Of a stretch of 64,000 bases of DNA, positions 8,916 to 17,848 are shown one piece after another. The notes under the pieces were generated by a model, which saw nothing but the letters and a program-made list of their open reading frames with translations, made no database searches and was not told the origin of the DNA. Each line of letters opens with the position of its first letter. Positions within the stretch are counted from its first letter, which is position 1. Origin of the DNA: Oopsacas minuta (Eukaryota > Animalia > Porifera). The stretch spans positions 357,690 through 421,689 of the forward strand of contig JAKMXF010000354.1 in the NCBI GenBank assembly GCA_024704765.1. Reading direction: 5' to 3'. Position numbers and translations under genes: made by a program.

Positions 8916-11231
8916 TCAAAATATAGGATTGGAAGGCGAGAGATAACGTTTATAAATGTTGTGGGCGGATTTATCAAGTTTCCATATCTTATGCATTCCT
9001 TTAATGGGTACAATCATTTTGAGAAAATGCGGATCTTCACAAATAAAACCATATGGAGATTCAGACTCATCACTAAATGGGAGTGACGTATAGTCCTCTC
9101 GGATGAGGCAATCTTTCAGATTTACACATCCTAGTAGAGTGCTGGTAGGATAAGAATCTGGGAATTCTATAGGCCCATATAATGTCCTATAAAAAGTTTC
9201 AACATCATTAATGTCATTCTCTATTGGTGTACGAGCAGTGGAAGCAATCCATAGTCTACCTCTGTGAGTTGTGTACCATGTTCTTCCTTCTATCCGTTTG
9301 ATACCACATACCAGGAGAGAGGCCCATGGCTGATGCATACTCAGACAAGAACCTCTATCACTAAGCTCTGCTAGATGTGAGTCCTGTATTCTGTAATTGC
9401 TAAGCTTCTCAGACGATAAATCCTGATATTGTGATCGGGATGGTTGATGACTTTTCAGCAAGAATTTTGGGGTAAATGGAATGCTAGGATGAGCTAGAGA
9501 GTTTGTGTTAAGCTGAATATCATTATGAGTATCTTCTAACTGTGTGTGTTGGTAGTCGCTCCCTCTCTCTATGAAGTCTCTTGCAGCTTGTTCAGAGAGT
9601 TGAGGTTTCTCCTCTTCAATTGCCTAACACAGTCTGTCACATGATTCGCAATATAAAGTACAGTATATTAGCCTACCTGTTTCCCAGAGATATCTAAAGT
9701 GACTGTAAAAGCTCCCCTCTTTGAAGGGTGTTTGAGTTTATGCTGAGTATCTTCTATCTCCTCAGCTCTAGCTGCTTGTTCTGGAGACATCCATTTGGTA
9801 GCTCTGTAGTAATCACTCTCATCATCGTACACCTTGGTTCTCTGCTGGCAAGTCCTATCATATTCTAACAACCTGTTCTTGTAGGCTACTGCAGTTTTGA
9901 AAGAGGAAGGAGCTAGCTCGTTTTTCTGTTGTGAGTTATCAGTAAAATAATTATTACAAATATAATTGTTAATGAATACATATCGTATTACCTCAAATAA
10001 TAGCCGGAACGATTATTCGAGGTAATACGGTATGTACTCACTTTATCGACAACAAAGTCATCAGAGTTTTGTATATCAAATTTCCTATTTATATTGTCTA
10101 GGATGTTAGACGCTTTCTTGCCACCCTTATTCAAGGTTTCCTGGTCCTGCTGAGAGACAACAAGAGCACCACAGAAGAGACAGGGGCCAGCACCCTCCTG
10201 CGAGCAGACAATCCTCCCACACTCTGTACAGTTGTTTATTAGGGCATGTTTCTGACCAATACACTGACAAGCGTGCCGACCTGGGAGTCTAGTTGATACC
10301 CGAGATCCTTCTGAGCTAGTAAATGGGACAAACTTATGAGATGATCGCTTCTTGATTAAATTTTCTTCTGTTCCATATGCACTACTATCACGATCTTCTA
10401 ACAATAACATTAGTAGTATGTAATCTATAGTGATCGGCTAAGATTTTCTGTCGGAACGGGATCGACCCAAGACTGTCGAATTTTGCAGGGATTTAAAAGT
10501 GCATAAACATACGTAATAAAGAAACGTAAACTATTGATTCAACGACTTGTGAACTATTGTTAGAGGAAATTGACCTCAAATCTAAAAGAATGGCTGGAAT
10601 TCAAACTACAAGTGCAAAGTAATTACTGAAAAGTAACGGTATCTGGTAAAATTAAAACTTCATTAAACCATAAATATGAGTTTGGATTAATTCATTCGGA
10701 TTCGCATTATATAAAGGTGTTATAAATTCCCGGCAATAACCGGAAATTAACCACGATTCCAGGTTGATCCCTAATATATTGTAGTATTAACTTACTCTGT
10801 ATATTATTAATGTGTTTCCTCTCTGGCATGTATACTAATTGGTCTTGTGAAGGCTTCATGTAAGGCTTGGGAGTATCTTGACCCTCCCTAACAACTGCAG
10901 GATTTTGCTTCTTACTCCTCTTGGGAGCGTCTGGTATTAAAGGCATTGAAAGTACAGGTTGATGTGGGTTGATTTGGATTTTACTTTTTTCTATTTTAAC
11001 AGAGGTCTCATGAGTAGGAGGGGGATGTATTTTCCTGGCTCGGAGCTGGTTAATAAACTCTGTAATATCTGTAGGTAGTGTGTTAGGAAAGAGATCTTTG
11101 AGAAATTCCTGTGTATCTTCATCAGATTCTAGAGTTAGAAAATAGTGTATGACAGCCTCGTCCACTTTAGTCCCAATAATCTTGATGAACTGTCTATTTA
11201 CCCATGCAAATAAATCTGCTTCTGTCGTCAT
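8916..11231 (-). CDS. TRIP4: Activating signal cointegrator 1 (ASC-1), 4 exons
   Basis: Exons about 11231-10796, 10398-10042, 9925-9677, 9623-8916. zf-C2HC5 CQCIGQKHALINNCTECGRIVCSQEGAGPCLFCG, RTKVYDDESDYY motif, C-terminal ASCH domain CLSMHQPWASLLVCGIKRIEGRTW. Confidence 0.93.
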
Positions 11232-12161
11232 TGTTACAATGTTAGTCTAGTCAGTGTGGTAATTAATTAATTGATGCCCACTATACTACAAGTATAATAT
11301 ACGACAGGTTATTTCTTACTAATCCAAATATTAACTACAAATAATAAACTATATAGTTATTATACAATTACGCAAAACGTGTCTCGAAATTTCTGACTCA
11401 GACAATGATACATATTAGAGCCATCAATTTTGTAAAATTTGATATAAAATTCAGTCTGGTTTAAGCCAGGTAAGCATCATATCACCAGAAACTATTCTGC
11501 TAAATAATGTTAGATCCAGACTTTAGTATGTTACGTATGTACTAGCACTTTAGATGTTATGTATTCGTATGATTATAGAATGATACTAAAGTCTCGGAAG
11601 GTAGTTCAAATTGTTTGTGTGGAGCAAATAACAGCCATTCAATATAAGAATTATATCCACGAGCATAGTAGCATAATTATGTAAGACAGGTATCTGGGGA
11701 AAAGGAGACAATGTTATAGCCATTTAAGGGTACAGTAATTACTTAATGTATATTTAGGTAATTAGGTATCATATTCGGCAACTGTATTTGTAACCCTTTC
11801 AATATCAATGTAATTACAGGTGTAGCCAACGTCAATCAAATTCTACAAGGATATCATCGGAGAATGAAACTGGACGGTTGGACATTTGAAAACGAAATAA
11901 ATCCTTATTAGAGAAAATGATTTTTCTTATGATACAATATAACACCTCAAAAAGGATATGAGCTCAAATAATGAATGGAACCATACAGGAAATAGATTGT
12001 TCATAATTAACAAAGTAGTGAGATCTATTATATATCATTATAGAATTACTACGAAGTTAAATATACACTCTAAAATAAATAATTCTGAATTCTGAATTCT
12101 AAATTATAACAAATCACTAAAATTTAAACAGATCAGCACACAAATGAAGATGAGAATATCC

Positions 12162-15100
12162 TTACAGATCAGCAATTGAGTGACTCCAAACTCCTTTACT
12201 GACGTCATAATCTAGTTTCAGTTCTCGAATTCCAGGTTTAACATCCAACTGAATTTCAAAATCTGGTTCATTGTAATGTCCATGGAAGACTAGGACTAGA
12301 GTTAACTGGGATCCTGCTATAGCATTGAGCTTGCAAGTGAATGGCTCTTTATCTATTTTATTCTCTCCCTCCTGATTCGGTAACTTTGTGTAGAGCGCTA
12401 TATAAGAATAAATATAAAAGAATATATCGAATTTAAAATGTATTTCTCAATTGGACAAATGTATTGTAAGGAGTATAATAAATGTCCAAAATTAGACAAC
12501 TGTTAATTCCACCGTCCGCATCAAGTTTCGATCATACACAAATATAGCAATTATTATCCACAATGGCGGGGCGTTAGTAGGTGGTGTAAATGCACGACAT
12601 TGTTATGCAAGGCTGGCCACGCCACTGGCAATATGTAAAATAATGTAATTTGGTTACATAAGGTAAGAACATAATAATAACAAATAAGATAAAGAGTATG
12701 ATATGATTCAGCGTATCTAAAATTAATTATTCTAAAAAGTTCTATTTTAAAATTAGAAATTATACCACTACCACACTTAAGGAATTAACGTATTTAGGAT
12801 ATGAATAATTTGTGCACGAATACGTTATGAAATAATTAGATAATATAATGTAATGCCGTCAGGAGGCTAACAGGGAAATCTAATCGATCTGAAATAATTT
12901 CAACTTTATTAAGACAATATTTTCTCTGTTAAAATATACAGCAAATTAGCTAATAGATGAAACTCTAATATTGTAGATACGTATGTATTAAGATGTAATT
13001 ATTAATGATAGAATTCTTTGCACTTTATTAATTGTAGACAGTACTGACGTACAGAATAGGACAGTAAATGCAATAAGAAAACTAATTAGCTAAAACATAA
13101 TTACTAGAATTAGAATATTTGTATCCAATTCTTGTGAGACTCAGAAACGATTACAATTCTACCAGACTTAGTTACGGCTACTCCCTTAGGAGTTTTCAAT
13201 ACAGTTCCTGTTCTAGGATCACTACCTATACTGCAGAACACGTCTCCATCAGGATGTGCAATATCTACTGTGTCGTTTTTCCAATTGCTAATTAGGAAAT
13301 TACCCATACAGTCAATGGTGAAGTGTTGGGGAGATTCAATAGTAAAGCTAGAATGTAGTAAATGTATGTCTGATATAAGTCTTCCTGACTTGTTGAACTT
13401 ATGCAAACACGGCCTACTATAGTCCACTACGTACACGAAATCTTGGTAAACTTTAACGTCTGATGGATGAATAAGATTGCTTCCGAATTTTCTGAGGAAA
13501 TTAAGATCTGAAGAGTAGACTAGCACAGAATTGAGCTTAGCATCTGTCAGGTATACTTCTCCAGTGAATGCGTCTACAGTAATACCGAGAGGTCTTCGTG
13601 GCTGATCTTCTAAATTGAAATTGACATCGTGTAGGCTCTTAATGTATACGGGATGAGAAGTACAATCATATTTGAACACATTATGCAAGGTTGCGTCAGC
13701 TACATAGATACTGTTTTGAAAATATGCTATTCCACACGGCTCTTTAAGTCTCTTGCTGTCGAACTCGTTAATAAATTCACATTCCATAGAGAAGATTTGG
13801 ATTCTATGGTTACCCGTATCCAAAACGAAAATTCTTTCTGAATCATCGTCAACAGCTACACCTGTCGGGCGATTAAATACACTAGAAATGCTTCCGACTT
13901 TCCCAATCGATGTAATGGCTTGTTTTGACGTAGAATATTTTGGAACAACTTGTTGGATAATTCTTCCTAAATTAGAGATTTTTCGTAAAATTTCGTTAGT
14001 ATTACAGAAAAAATTGACATAGCCTTGTTCCTTCTCGTCCAATTCAAGACGTAGCTTTTCATCATTAATCTGCTCTGATATCTTACTCTGAATATGTTCC
14101 AATTTGTTAACCTTAAACGAGCTTAAAACACTTTCTAAACTCTCAATTTTTTGTAAAGTATCCATTCTCTCAATTTCTTTATTTGTTAAATCGATTTTCA
14201 ATTGTTTAACTATGGACAGCAATTCAGATCTTCTTCTTTCAACGCTACTTATTATATTATCGAATTTCTGTTCGATCTGTTTCTCAATTTCTTCAATTTG
14301 GCCTTCCATATTCATGTAAACCATACATGTCGCCATTTTATTATAAATATAAATGTAATGAGTTTTCTTATTGATTGTAACTTCTAGAATATCAGTGGCT
14401 ATTTATCTATTTTGTGCAGTTTCAGTTTAACTAAGAATTGGCCTACTGGATTAATCAATTAGATGGTAATTGGACACTGTTCAAAGGAAAACGAATGTGC
14501 AAAGAACTTTATTTTATTTCTCTTAATAAGCGTGCAAAGCAAACAGCTACGCAAATAAGAATGAATAAATACCTGCTGACTGGCATAGTACTCAATTGTA
14601 AACTAAATAAATAAACATTCAATCAATTACAGAATATCATAATGTTGTCCAGAATTAGAACAGTAAGTAAATAATATGCGCAATCAGCAATCAGCAATCA
14701 GTATCTTGAAATTATATTAATTTATGATATCTGAATTTGAATTCTAATCAGATGGATAATCGCATATCTTCTAAAGATAAATTGATAACTTATTAGCAAA
14801 AGAACTGCAGTTTGATCAGACCATGTCAACCAGTAGGCGCAATTCATATTGATAAGATACAAATGTTGTTAGCATAATTGAAAGTTGGATAAAATTACAA
14901 TACTTATTGGAGAAGTATTATTAGTAAATAGTAACTAAGAGAATAGCATAGCAAGCTAACTAGCATGTACAGTTATTTGCAGTGGCTAGAGGATGAAGTT
15001 TCGAGTTCACATTCAAAACCATTGTATTGGCTGTGTTTGGTGTATTTTATACAGTTTTTATTATGTACTCGCTTTCCCATGGGTGTTGTGCTGGCGCGGA

Positions 15101-17848
15101 TTGAAGAGCAAACCTTGTAAGAAATACTGTACAGTTTGTTCAACAGGATTAGTAAATGGAATGATCAGTATTGTAACATGTTGTGGACTCGCGTATATAC
15201 TCACAAGATGTTGTATCAGAAATGCAGCGGATACAGAAATCACTGATGGTACAGCACCGAATTGTACAACCAATCAAGAAGATGTGTAAGGAACTGTAAA
15301 GACATTTTGGGACTGAGGAGGCGAAATTATGAGGAAGAAGTGCGGATACAGAACTGGTTTGTATTAAATATATATGATAATTTTTAAACAAATGAACAAT
15401 CATTTTGTTACTACTCATTTATTCGACAAGATAAATTATAGAATTTAAATGGATATGAAGAAAATATTCAATTACACTATAAGTGTTGGCAATAATTGAT
15501 TTCACAGCCCCCTTTAGTAATGGATATTTGTGATATCAAACAGATTTACCTCATAACAATTGATTCTAACTAGCTAACCTTGTATAATAGAATAAGGAAT
15601 GTCTTCGAATACATCTAAGCCTTGGAACCTGAATTCCCAATCATTTGTCATAGAAATTTGTGAGAAAGACAGCTTAGCACGTCTTTTCAATTTGAAACTA
15701 GGAATTGGAATCTTGAGTTCGTCTTCCACCAATTTTTTCTACAAACCACGATATAAAACACCTCAAATCAAAAGAACAGCTACACATATAATATAGCCTA
15801 CCATGAACACATCACACATACTGTGTACATTAATGGTAGCTAGATTGTATAGAGGAGTTTTCTGAAGATTACAAATAACTAATTTTCCTCTATTGGAGCC
15901 TACAGTAGCGGGTATAGTTGCTGCAGGCTGTACAGTAAGACTGGAGCCTAGCACTACACAGACGTCTGCTTTCCCTCCGTGATCAAATGCTGATTTTATT
16001 TCATTCTCAGGCAGTTGCTCTCCAAAGTTAATGATTGAGTCTAGTAGGATATTTCCGCAAGCTGGGTCATCACAACGACGAGTAGTCTCATGGTTAAACA
16101 CACCGAACTAAAGAGAACATCAAACAATCAAAATATGCCTAGTCAGATATCTTTTCAGTATAAATAAGAAATAACTTACTGCCTCACGTGTCTCGAAGTC
16201 TCTGAGATACTGAACACCACAAACAGAACAAGATTCAAGATTAGTATTACCATGTAACTCTGCAAGTTGTTTCGGATTCATACCGCTTCTCCTATGCAAA
16301 CCATCTACATTCTGAGAAACAGTGAACTTGATGAGGCCTGCTTCATGCAGAGCTACCATTGACATGTGTGTAACGGTTGGTAATGCACTGATTAGCTTAA
16401 CTGGCTTACTGCGACGAGAATGCGCCTGTCCATGTGCTCTCAGCTCCCAGACGCCAGGACCTAATAGAAATAGATATGGTGTACAGTAAACTCATGTATT
16501 TTGAAGCTCAATAGACTGCGACAATTACTTTAGCATAACCGATGACATTTATATTACTTTGACGAGTCTGGAACCATATTTGTACCATTTCAGACCTCGA
16601 TATATCCGTGTTCGATATAATGGGAATTGACTCGCTGTAATTATAAAAATGTACATGCTACGTATGGTCATACTATGATTTATAATAAAATTAAATAATG
16701 TATAGCTCTCCTACCTGTCTCCAACATAGTATTCATACCACTCCTGAAGTCTGGTATCCCTGCACTTGTACTGATACCAGCTCCTGTGAAGAATATCACA
16801 TGTTTCCCCTCTCTGATAAATTTAGCTACCATTTTAACTTTCTTATCCAAATCCTTAGCAGAGTCTACAAATTCTTTCTTCTGCTCCTCATCCTCTATGT
16901 TGTACTGCCTGCCTGCACCAGAATTAGCACCAGGTTTAGAACCAGGGATAACAGGGCCATCTCTCACGACTGTCTCAGTGGGTTTAAGTTTGTCTTTCAT
17001 ATTTCCAAGTTTTTGTTGAAATTCCTGAGTAGACTCTACAAGAGGTCTACATGCTTCTTCCTAAATAATATTCTAGAATAAAAACTAATGACAATAATGG
17101 ATTCAGTGTTTACCTTTCCACTAGAAGCAGTATCACCAGTATTCGAAGCTATTTTCCCACCAGTTGCAGCAGGAGGCTTATTTCCTACCTTTTTATCAAT
17201 TGACTCTTGTACCGTTCCGATAACCATCTCCATCATCTTATCCATTGCTTCTTCTTGCTTCTTATCCATTATTTCTGCCTGTTCTACTGTAGAAAGATAT
17301 CCTCCTCTCCTGGTGAGTACATTAACAGCCAATTTACCAGTAGATCCTCCTTCCCAGTTCAGTAAGTACTGAGTAGAATCATCACATTTACTCTAAATAT
17401 AAGAGGATAATCCAATAAACAATAAGGCATAAAATCCTAAACTTACCAGATCAGGAATACTCTCCAATGGATAAGGATAAACCAGACAATACTTCAGATT
17501 AACACAGCTCATAATAACAATTCTCTGCAGCTGATTTGGCTTTTTAAGTTGCAATACAACTCCATCGGTAGCCTCAATAGTGACAGTGTGTAGTTGGTGA
17601 ACAACATCAGGAACAAGGATGATATCTTTACACTTGTATACTTCCAATAGAGAAGACATAACCTTTACATTTACTACTATCTTACAGCCAATACTCTTCT
17701 CGATATACAACTTCCCAATCTGTTTGTTGATTATGAATGTACAGCCCTGACATCTGGATATATACACCATGTTGGATGGTTTTTCGCTTTCTACATTAAT
17801 TTCCTTATCTTTCTGAGAAGTGTACTCTATAAGCTTTCTTGACGACAT
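12162..17848 (-). CDS. C-CAP/cofactor C-like domain fused to a class IV (SIRT6/7-like) sirtuin, 669 aa, 7 exons
   Basis: Exons 17848-17447, 17392-17114, 17060-16715, 16460-16180, 16107-15802, 15738-15579, 12397-12162 sum to 2010 nt with compatible phases. Sirtuin motifs FFTGAGISTSAGIPDFR, TGPGVWE, SQNVDGLH, ELHGN, DSIINFGE, VLGSSLTVQPA, CNLQKT. Last exon has EPF..VFHGHYNEP..YDVSKGVW. Confidence 0.85.
13110..14336 (-). CDS. Coiled-coil + NHL beta-propeller protein (TRIM71/brat-like C-terminal half, no RING or B-box), intronless
   Basis: N-terminal heptad region followed by NHL repeats (FNRPTGVAVD..IFVLDTGNHRIQIF; PLGITVD..VYLTD; LKTPKGVAV). Lies inside the last sirtuin intron on the same strand. 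Confidence 0.88.
   Translation of the reverse strand: MATCMVYMNMEGQIEEIEKQIEQKFDNIISSVERRRSELLSIVKQLKIDLTNKEIERMDTLQKIESLESVLSSFKVNKLEHIQSKISEQINDEKLRLELDEKEQGYVNFFCNTNEILRKISNLGRIIQQVVPKYSTSKQAITSIGKVGSISSVFNRPTGVAVDDDSERIFVLDTGNHRIQIFSMECEFINEFDSKRLKEPCGIAYFQNSIYVADATLHNVFKYDCTSHPVYIKSLHDVNFNLEDQPRRPLGITVDAFTGEVYLTDAKLNSVLVYSSDLNFLRKFGSNLIHPSDVKVYQDFVYVVDYSRPCLHKFNKSGRLISDIHLLHSSFTIESPQHFTIDCMGNFLISNWKNDTVDIAHPDGDVFCSIGSDPRTGTVLKTPKGVAVTKSGRIVIVSESHKNWIQIF
14993..15289 (+). CDS. Small Cys-rich putative membrane protein, 98 aa, function unknown
   Basis: ATG-initiated ORF with two hydrophobic stretches and many Cys (CC pairs). A tttgcag acceptor-like site lies 10 nt before the ATG, as in neighbouring real genes. 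No family recognised. Confidence 0.45.
   Translation: MKFRVHIQNHCIGCVWCILYSFYYVLAFPWVLCWRGLKSKPCKKYCTVCSTGLVNGMISIVTCCGLAYILTRCCIRNAADTEITDGTAPNCTTNQEDV

Follow-up and report, generated by a model that had tools for sequence, protein, structure and literature searches.

A probable seven-exon SIRT6-type sirtuin gene of the glass sponge Oopsacas minuta, with its last exon beyond an intron-nested NHL gene on the same strand

Gene organization of the locus

The stretch of DNA analyzed here, which we call the window, comprises 64,000 nucleotides (nt) of the genome of the glass sponge Oopsacas minuta (GenBank assembly GCA_024704765.1, contig JAKMXF010000354.1, positions 357,690 to 421,689 of the forward strand), and it contains on its minus strand a sirtuin gene whose long sixth intron encloses an NHL gene on the same strand and a short open reading frame (ORF) on the opposite strand (Table 1). 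An earlier note, made from the letters of the window and a list of its ORFs, had proposed that this sirtuin possesses a hidden last exon on the far side of the nested genes, and the present analysis follows up that proposal. The sirtuin exons were traced on the minus strand from the sequence, and all coordinates are window positions.

The seven exons add up to 2010 nt, which is 669 codons and a stop, and the gap between the last two is 3181 nt, both as the earlier note had counted them; the first five introns are 54, 53, 254, 72, and 63 nt long. Exon 6 ends with ..PYSIIQ and is followed by the donor G/GTTAGC, where the unspliced frame adds a glycine and stops at the TAG at 15576-15574. The acceptor of exon 7 is TTATATAG/CG, and the sequence confirms that both sites are in phase 1 and that the exon ends lie at 15579 and 12397, exactly where they had been placed before. 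The acceptors of introns 1 to 5 are T-rich, and the tract before exon 7 is similar to those five. The start codon of the sirtuin is itself preceded by an acceptor-like sequence, TTATTCAG, with a CAG at 17852-17850 that is 1 nt from the ATG.

The frame of exon 7 is open for 94 codons from the TGA at 12449-12447 and contains no ATG, GTG, or TTG, and because it has no possible start codon it is absent from the ORF list; its 77 codons translate exactly as had been reported. The word hidden therefore holds for the ORF list, but not for the public annotation, in which the exon is present, spliced to the NHL gene in the NCBI protein P0021 (see below). Exon 7 has a G+C content of 39%, compared with 28-30% in the DNA on both flanks. 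As a rough estimate, a 94-codon open frame is expected by chance about 0.15 times per strand in 3.2 kb of DNA with 33% G+C, so that the frame taken alone is only suggestive, and it is homology that makes exon 7 certain. A search of the genome for additional copies of exon 6 or exon 7 found none, each being present in a single copy.

Table 1. Features of the sirtuin/NHL locus. Positions are those of the window; a slash marks the splice position, and Pfam values are E-values.
Feature	Position	Strand	Description
Sirtuin exon 1	17447..17848	minus	134 codons; N-terminal domain resembling C-CAP/cofactor-C (Pfam CAP_C 1.5e-9, passing the curated cut-off)
Sirtuin exon 2	17114..17392	minus	93 codons; linker; no family match in Pfam
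Sirtuin exon 3	16715..17060	minus	Start of the SIR2 domain, motif GAGISTSAGIPDFR; phase-1 donor; Pfam SIR2 positions 1-18
Sirtuin exon 4	16180..16460	minus	SIR2 core with LHG catalytic-histidine motif; Pfam SIR2 1.5e-10
Sirtuin exon 5	15802..16107	minus	End of the SIR2 domain; Pfam SIR2 1.9e-7
Sirtuin exon 6	15579..15738	minus	53 codons and 1 base; predicted first strands of the C-terminal beta-sandwich; donor AAG/GTTAGC
Sirtuin intron 6	12398..15578	minus	3181 nt, phase 1; contains the NHL gene and the 98-aa ORF; junction backed by colinear homologues
Sirtuin exon 7	12162..12397	minus	2 bases, 77 codons, and stop; predicted remaining two thirds of the YEATS-like beta-sandwich
NHL gene	13110..14336	minus	Intronless, 408 amino acids (aa), coiled-coil and NHL propeller; Pfam NHL 2.8e-23
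98-aa ORF	14993..15289	plus	Cys-rich; coding status unproven
AATAAA	15418..15423	minus	Possible poly(A) signal of an isoform lacking exon 7; sequence motif only
Internal NHL donor used by P0021	13161..13163	minus	TCTG/GTAGAA, cut between 13163 and 13162; phase 1; judged an annotation artefact

Homology evidence that exon 7 ends the sirtuin

The exons were queried singly, and in searches and in folding the joined protein was represented by a naturally occurring orthologue, P0002. A full HMMER (phmmer) scan of 1.84 billion representative proteins with the exon 7 peptide returned seven matches, with P0001 (E 9.4e-24) ranked first and P0002 (E 3.3e-21) second. P0002 is a 326-aa fragment of a sirtuin orthologous to that of the window, and its residues 1-92 align with exon 4 (84% identity), residues 93-194 with exon 5 (79%), residues 197-246 with exon 6 (68%), and residues 248-324 with exon 7 (52%). 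Residue 247 is an alanine, exactly what the split codon G/CG gives, which leaves no space for a further exon. The earlier note had suggested aligning the last exon with the C-termini of related sirtuins, and in this alignment exon 7 is colinear with the end of P0002 and follows directly upon exon 6. A near-identical protein, P0012, derives from a Logan contig of 1085 nt, so that the order of exon 6 and exon 7 is physically contiguous in the nucleic acid of a relative. A distant homologue (P0007/P0015), found on raw metagenome contigs, is 39% identical to exon 7, and in it a single ORF covers the last part of the catalytic domain together with the C-terminal domain in full, with the preceding exon starting directly at the SIR2 NAD-binding motif. 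The colinearity of P0002 and this metagenome homologue support the claim that 12397-12162 is the last coding exon of the sirtuin, and the order of SIR2 followed by the C-terminal domain, which is not in Pfam, appears to be kept from sponges to a microbial eukaryote known from metagenomes. The gene of the distant homologue in this metagenome eukaryote (L013:262-1470, plus strand; also L012 and L014) is compact and SIRT6-like and is without a CAP_C-like N-terminal domain.

P0001, the shorter of the two matches named above, has 81 residues and is 65% identical to exon 7, and its start, MYSNIA, aligns without gaps with IYSYIA, the in-frame translation of the intron end in the window; from this we infer that in the closer relative, too, an intron boundary falls at this position. 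In a related species, one ENA contig of 1,739,404 nt bears at least four uninterrupted ORFs equivalent to exons 4 to 7 (P0002, P0008, P0009, and P0010), which are distinct though near-identical, and P0011, on a contig of 399,267 nt, is a further fragment. It looks as if the 3' part of the sirtuin gene had been amplified there in intronless form, possibly by retro-copying. An alignment scan of metagenomes with exon 7 returned no relative, and the exon 7 portion of P0021, used for a word search, matched P0021 alone.

As an alternative to the distant exon, the earlier note had considered that the sirtuin might use a nearer acceptor, for example the AAG near 15513. The in-phase acceptors of this kind give tails of only 1-60 aa, none of which has homologues, and they were rejected as substitutes for exon 7.

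Class of the sirtuin

The Pfam SIR2 domain is spread over exons 3 to 5, and the best PDB matches of P0002 are human SIRT6 (E 1.3e-38) followed by SIRT7 (1.3e-34). By eye, we take GAGISTSAGIPDFRS in exon 3 to be the NAD-binding GAGxS..GIPDFR motif and the histidine of AELHGN in exon 4 to be the catalytic residue. Judged by its sequence, with the similarity to SIRT6 and SIRT7 and the motifs in agreement, the window sirtuin is a member of class IV (SIRT6/7-type). The alignment with human SIRT6 stops at the IPxP..F/W segment, which opens exon 6, and compared with the human enzyme the glass-sponge sirtuin adds a folded, conserved C-terminal beta-sandwich of about 120 residues, as predicted, and a CAP_C-like N-terminal domain.

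Structure predicted for the C-terminal domain

With an alignment of 19 rows as input, AlphaFold gave a model of P0002 that is poor in the truncated catalytic part, whereas for the C-terminal domain (C-domain; residues about 208-326) the model shows a predicted nine-strand beta-sandwich with block means of the predicted local distance difference test (pLDDT) of 75-90. The strand at residues 245-251 crosses the junction of exons 6 and 7, and in the model the two exons together encode one beta-sandwich domain, so that the product of a transcript that stops after exon 6 would have no more than the first strands of it.

Comparison of this domain by VIA-align with 48,161 PDB representatives gave YEATS domains for all of the top eight matches (Z 10.8-9.2 over 97-108 residues), with the next fold at Z 8.1. 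All matches listed by Foldseek were likewise YEATS-domain entries, at E 1.6e-5 to 8e-4, and the top one is a chain of a Mediator-Pol II complex that we take to be Taf14. The model of the distant homologue P0007 is of low confidence (pLDDT about 62-75 in the domain), and YEATS again ranked first (Z 6.3-4.4). The eight-stranded Ig-like topology of YEATS domains is found in the predicted models of both P0002 and P0007, models that rest on shallow alignments. The predicted fold of the sirtuin C-domain thus matches the YEATS domains known from AF9/ENL, GAS41/YEATS4, YEATS2, Taf14, Yaf9, and Sas5.

The sequence comparisons gave a different picture. The Pfam YEATS family (PF03366) has no match to the window exons, P0002, P0007, or P0011, and a genome-wide scan with it found only three canonical YEATS loci, all elsewhere in the genome. 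Our own profile of the C-domain, run against exon pieces of canonical sponge YEATS genes, and three hhalign runs against such pieces all gave insignificant scores and inconsistent registers. The C-domain family is nearly invariant in F-x-G-H-Y-x-E-P and in Y..G.W, with all of the invariant residues carried by exon 7, whereas YEATS domains have the pocket motifs LHxSF and GWGxF; these canonical motifs are not recognizable in the C-domain, for which no significant sequence register was obtained, and in a by-eye alignment the loops that match the YEATS pocket by strand order are without aromatic residues. Since the structure aligners agree and no sequence method supports membership, we name the C-domain YEATS-like in predicted fold only. 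The literature was searched for sirtuins whose C-domain is YEATS-like or a beta-sandwich, and no relevant work came up.

One side observation concerns the position of introns. The GAS41/YEATS4-like gene of the sponge (L008:1666-1716, minus strand; genome G000, contig C309) contains a short phase-0 intron between ..EDMPYIHQ and VEFRLH..., and intron 6 of the sirtuin lies in phase 1 between ..EDIPYSIIQ and (A)LYTKL.., a likeness that was noticed by eye and is without statistical support.

The nested NHL gene and the public gene model

An intact gene on the same strand within the 3.18-kb intron was part of the original proposal, and it is borne out by the 408-aa ORF with its Pfam NHL match and by full-length orthologues in related assemblies, which have 405-409 aa and 53-69% identity. 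For orthologues that stop where the ORF itself does, the identity is 64-69%, and two of the orthologues (P0022 and P0024) end in ..SGRIVVVSE(S/T)H(K/R)NWIQ(I/M)F, the same as the unspliced ORF of the window. The stop codon is followed downstream by AATAAA at 13029 and 12910, and AG dinucleotides lie 31-48 nt upstream of the ATG (14367-14384, minus strand), where candidate acceptors end at 14384, 14381, and 14367. The genome contains more than 100 intronless paralogues of the NHL family, none more than 34% identical to the nested gene and the closest at about 30%, and a search for terminal or inverted repeats around the intron content found only short, AT-rich repeats at chance level. Given the conserved orthologues, the distance to the paralogues, and the lack of flanking terminal repeats, we judge the NHL gene to be an old, selected gene and not a recent copy or fresh insertion. 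The NHL orthologue P0024 and the exon 7 orthologue P0013 each lie on a contig of 879,451 nt, and this equality in size, the one ground for the statement, suggests that the linkage of sirtuin and NHL gene is conserved in relatives. The locus thus has the features of a nested pair, namely coding exons of one host gene on both sides of a guest that is intact, conserved, and on the same strand. Looked up by exact match, the NHL protein had no genomic or RNA context on record.

The same intron contains, as had also been noted, an ORF of 98 aa on the opposite strand. Its presence is clear, but its status as a gene is unsupported, with no Pfam match, homologue, paralogue, or Atlas match found for it; it is supported only by how long it is and by an acceptor-like CAG and TAG that stand 3-11 nt ahead of the ATG (14982-14991, plus strand).

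Most of the NCBI protein P0021 (469 aa), named "E3 ubiquitin-protein ligase TRIM71-like [Oopsacas minuta]," is 100% identical to the NHL ORF. It follows this ORF to ..KGVAVTKS and continues with an alanine and the whole exon 7 peptide, so that it uses the same acceptor as the sirtuin (12397) together with a donor inside the NHL ORF (Table 1), and it loses the last 17 residues of that ORF. Pfam finds neither a RING nor a B-box in the NHL ORF or in P0021, only families of NHL-type propellers, and the name TRIM71-like is therefore a loose one. The O. minuta annotation was made with BRAKER1/Augustus using unstranded RNA-seq hints. According to the Aphrocallistes vastus study, the small count of nested genes in O. 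minuta, 83 compared with 2432 in A. vastus, is put down to the annotation method (PMC10282587). P0021 is probably chimeric, joining the NHL ORF to exon 7 of the sirtuin, and we judge it an artefact because the NHL orthologues keep their own C-terminus, exon 7 alone is an incomplete domain, and the annotation settings disfavor nesting; its structure is best explained by a predictor unable to nest genes. The annotated sirtuin most likely lacks its last 78 residues.

P0021 could also be taken at face value, in which case exon 7 would have been captured by the NHL gene through the donor at 13163 and the sirtuin would end at the TAG at 15574, with 592 aa. The structure of P0021 is exactly what this would produce, both donors are in phase 1 and carry the G, the sirtuin donor is weak, and an AATAAA stands 150 nt past the read-through stop. 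Such a capture would nevertheless remove the last 17 residues of the propeller, which P0022 and P0024 retain, and it would append two thirds of a predicted beta-sandwich without its first strands. Every residue that is invariant in the C-domain family is kept in exon 7, and Augustus as used does not nest genes. We regard exon capture as very improbable. A fusion of sirtuin and NHL protein by way of the acceptors at 14384 or 14381, both in frame with the NHL ORF, was rejected as well, the linker being AT-rich and like a 5' untranslated region and no homologue being so fused.

Discussion

The locus is with good confidence explained as a seven-exon sirtuin gene, predicted to encode a protein of three parts, in which a SIRT6-type catalytic domain is preceded by a C-CAP-like domain and followed by a beta-sandwich, with exon 7 lying beyond an intron-nested NHL gene of the same strand. 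For full-length sirtuin, RNA polymerase II would have to run on past the NHL gene with its AATAAA signals (13029 and 12910), and the spliceosome would have to join 15579 to 12397 across it. The NHL gene most likely has its own mRNA, which would come from a promoter within the intron or be produced by spliced-leader trans-splicing at the sites 31-48 nt upstream of its ATG, and which would be cleaved after the AATAAA at 13029; trans-splicing could free this mRNA from the host precursor. Competition or co-regulation of host and guest is a reasonable inference from such an arrangement.

Several observations weigh against this explanation. The donor of intron 6, GTTAGC, has a T at +3, whereas the other five donors are GTAAGT (twice), GTAAAC, GTAGGA, and GTAGGC, and a stop codon stands directly after it, with an AATAAA some 150 nt beyond the read-through stop. 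Between the stop of exon 7 and the ATG of the next gene, neither AATAAA nor ATTAAA occurs in the 930 nt of the minus strand (11232-12161). The public model P0021 ties exon 7 to the NHL gene and may reflect RNA-seq hints for that acceptor. Finally, the evidence for nesting in relatives consists only of the equal size of the contigs that carry P0024 and P0013.

Taken together, the weak donor, the immediate stop, and the nearby AATAAA make short sirtuin transcripts plausible. They would be expected if splicing of the long intron competed with intronic cleavage and polyadenylation to give full-length and short sirtuin, while some NHL transcripts spliced into exon 7, a read-through chimera of the sort that same-strand nesting permits. 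The sense strand of the intron does hold seven AATAAA hexamers, but this is about the level of chance in an AT-rich intron (estimated at about 5), and the truncated beta-sandwich would, judging from the model, probably not fold. That both forms are made in this way strikes us as rather unlikely, though it is to be taken seriously. The distance of exon 7 from the rest of the gene, 3.2 kb, and the missing canonical poly(A) hexamer after it would fit a decaying relic that is no longer expressed. The exon is hardly what such decay would leave, however, with its 94-codon frame open, 65% identity to a relative, all invariant motif residues kept, and an exon-like G+C content, and we consider a relic the least credible of the readings discussed here.

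Some observations on the surroundings of exon 7 may be added. The closest variant of a poly(A) signal 3' of exon 7 is AATAAG at 11909. The heptamer TTATTCT occurs on the minus strand both 10 nt before the donor of intron 6 (15589-15595) and 7 nt before the end of its acceptor (12405-12411), which could be either a weak direct repeat at the ends of the intron or a coincidence in DNA so rich in A and T. Downstream, the neighboring gene on the minus strand (8916-11231) has ORF pieces of 174, 140, and 181 aa, and by eye it resembles the ASC-1/TRIP4 type, from a Cys-rich zinc-finger piece and an ASCH-like C-terminus.

Nested genes on the same strand are known from other animals, for example F8B inside intron 22 of human F8. 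There, too, the host pre-mRNA is transcribed through a guest of the same sense and spliced across it, but F8B shares downstream exons of its host, whereas the NHL gene appears fully self-contained. In the glass sponge A. vastus, 2432 nested genes, or 12.4% of all genes, are described in the genome study, many of them conserved (PMC10282587), and these are likewise intronless guests in introns of multi-exon hosts in a compact hexactinellid genome. The same text reports spliced-leader trans-splicing for glass sponges and shows, for the glassin locus of O. minuta, a model that mis-joins a nested gene (PMC10282587). The rarity argument of the earlier note, that same-strand nesting is rarer than antisense nesting, thus fails in glass sponges, which are rich in nested genes (PMC10282587), and the sirtuin/NHL nesting is a further case of an arrangement already published as a hallmark of this group. 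The accessible text of that catalogue makes no mention of the sirtuin/NHL pair or of its chimeric public model, nor does it take up on which strands the host and guest of a nested pair lie (PMC10282587).

What is new here is that the gene model is corrected, that a public model is exposed as chimeric, and that an unnamed conserved C-terminal domain of a sirtuin lineage comes to light. Two public models of O. minuta are probably wrong, and they would mislead domain-based or phylogenetic work on sponge chromatin enzymes or on NHL families. More generally, this locus illustrates how automatic gene prediction fails when genes are nested on one strand, as they commonly are in glass sponges. As for the C-domain itself, it is conceivable, although we would not yet call it probable, that it represents an undescribed YEATS-fold module joined to a SIRT6-type deacylase, possibly an ancient domain by which class IV sirtuins are targeted to substrates or to chromatin. 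If this were true, an eraser of acyl-lysine would be permanently fused to the fold of an acyl-lysine reader, with a C-CAP-like domain at the N-terminus as a third part in glass sponges.

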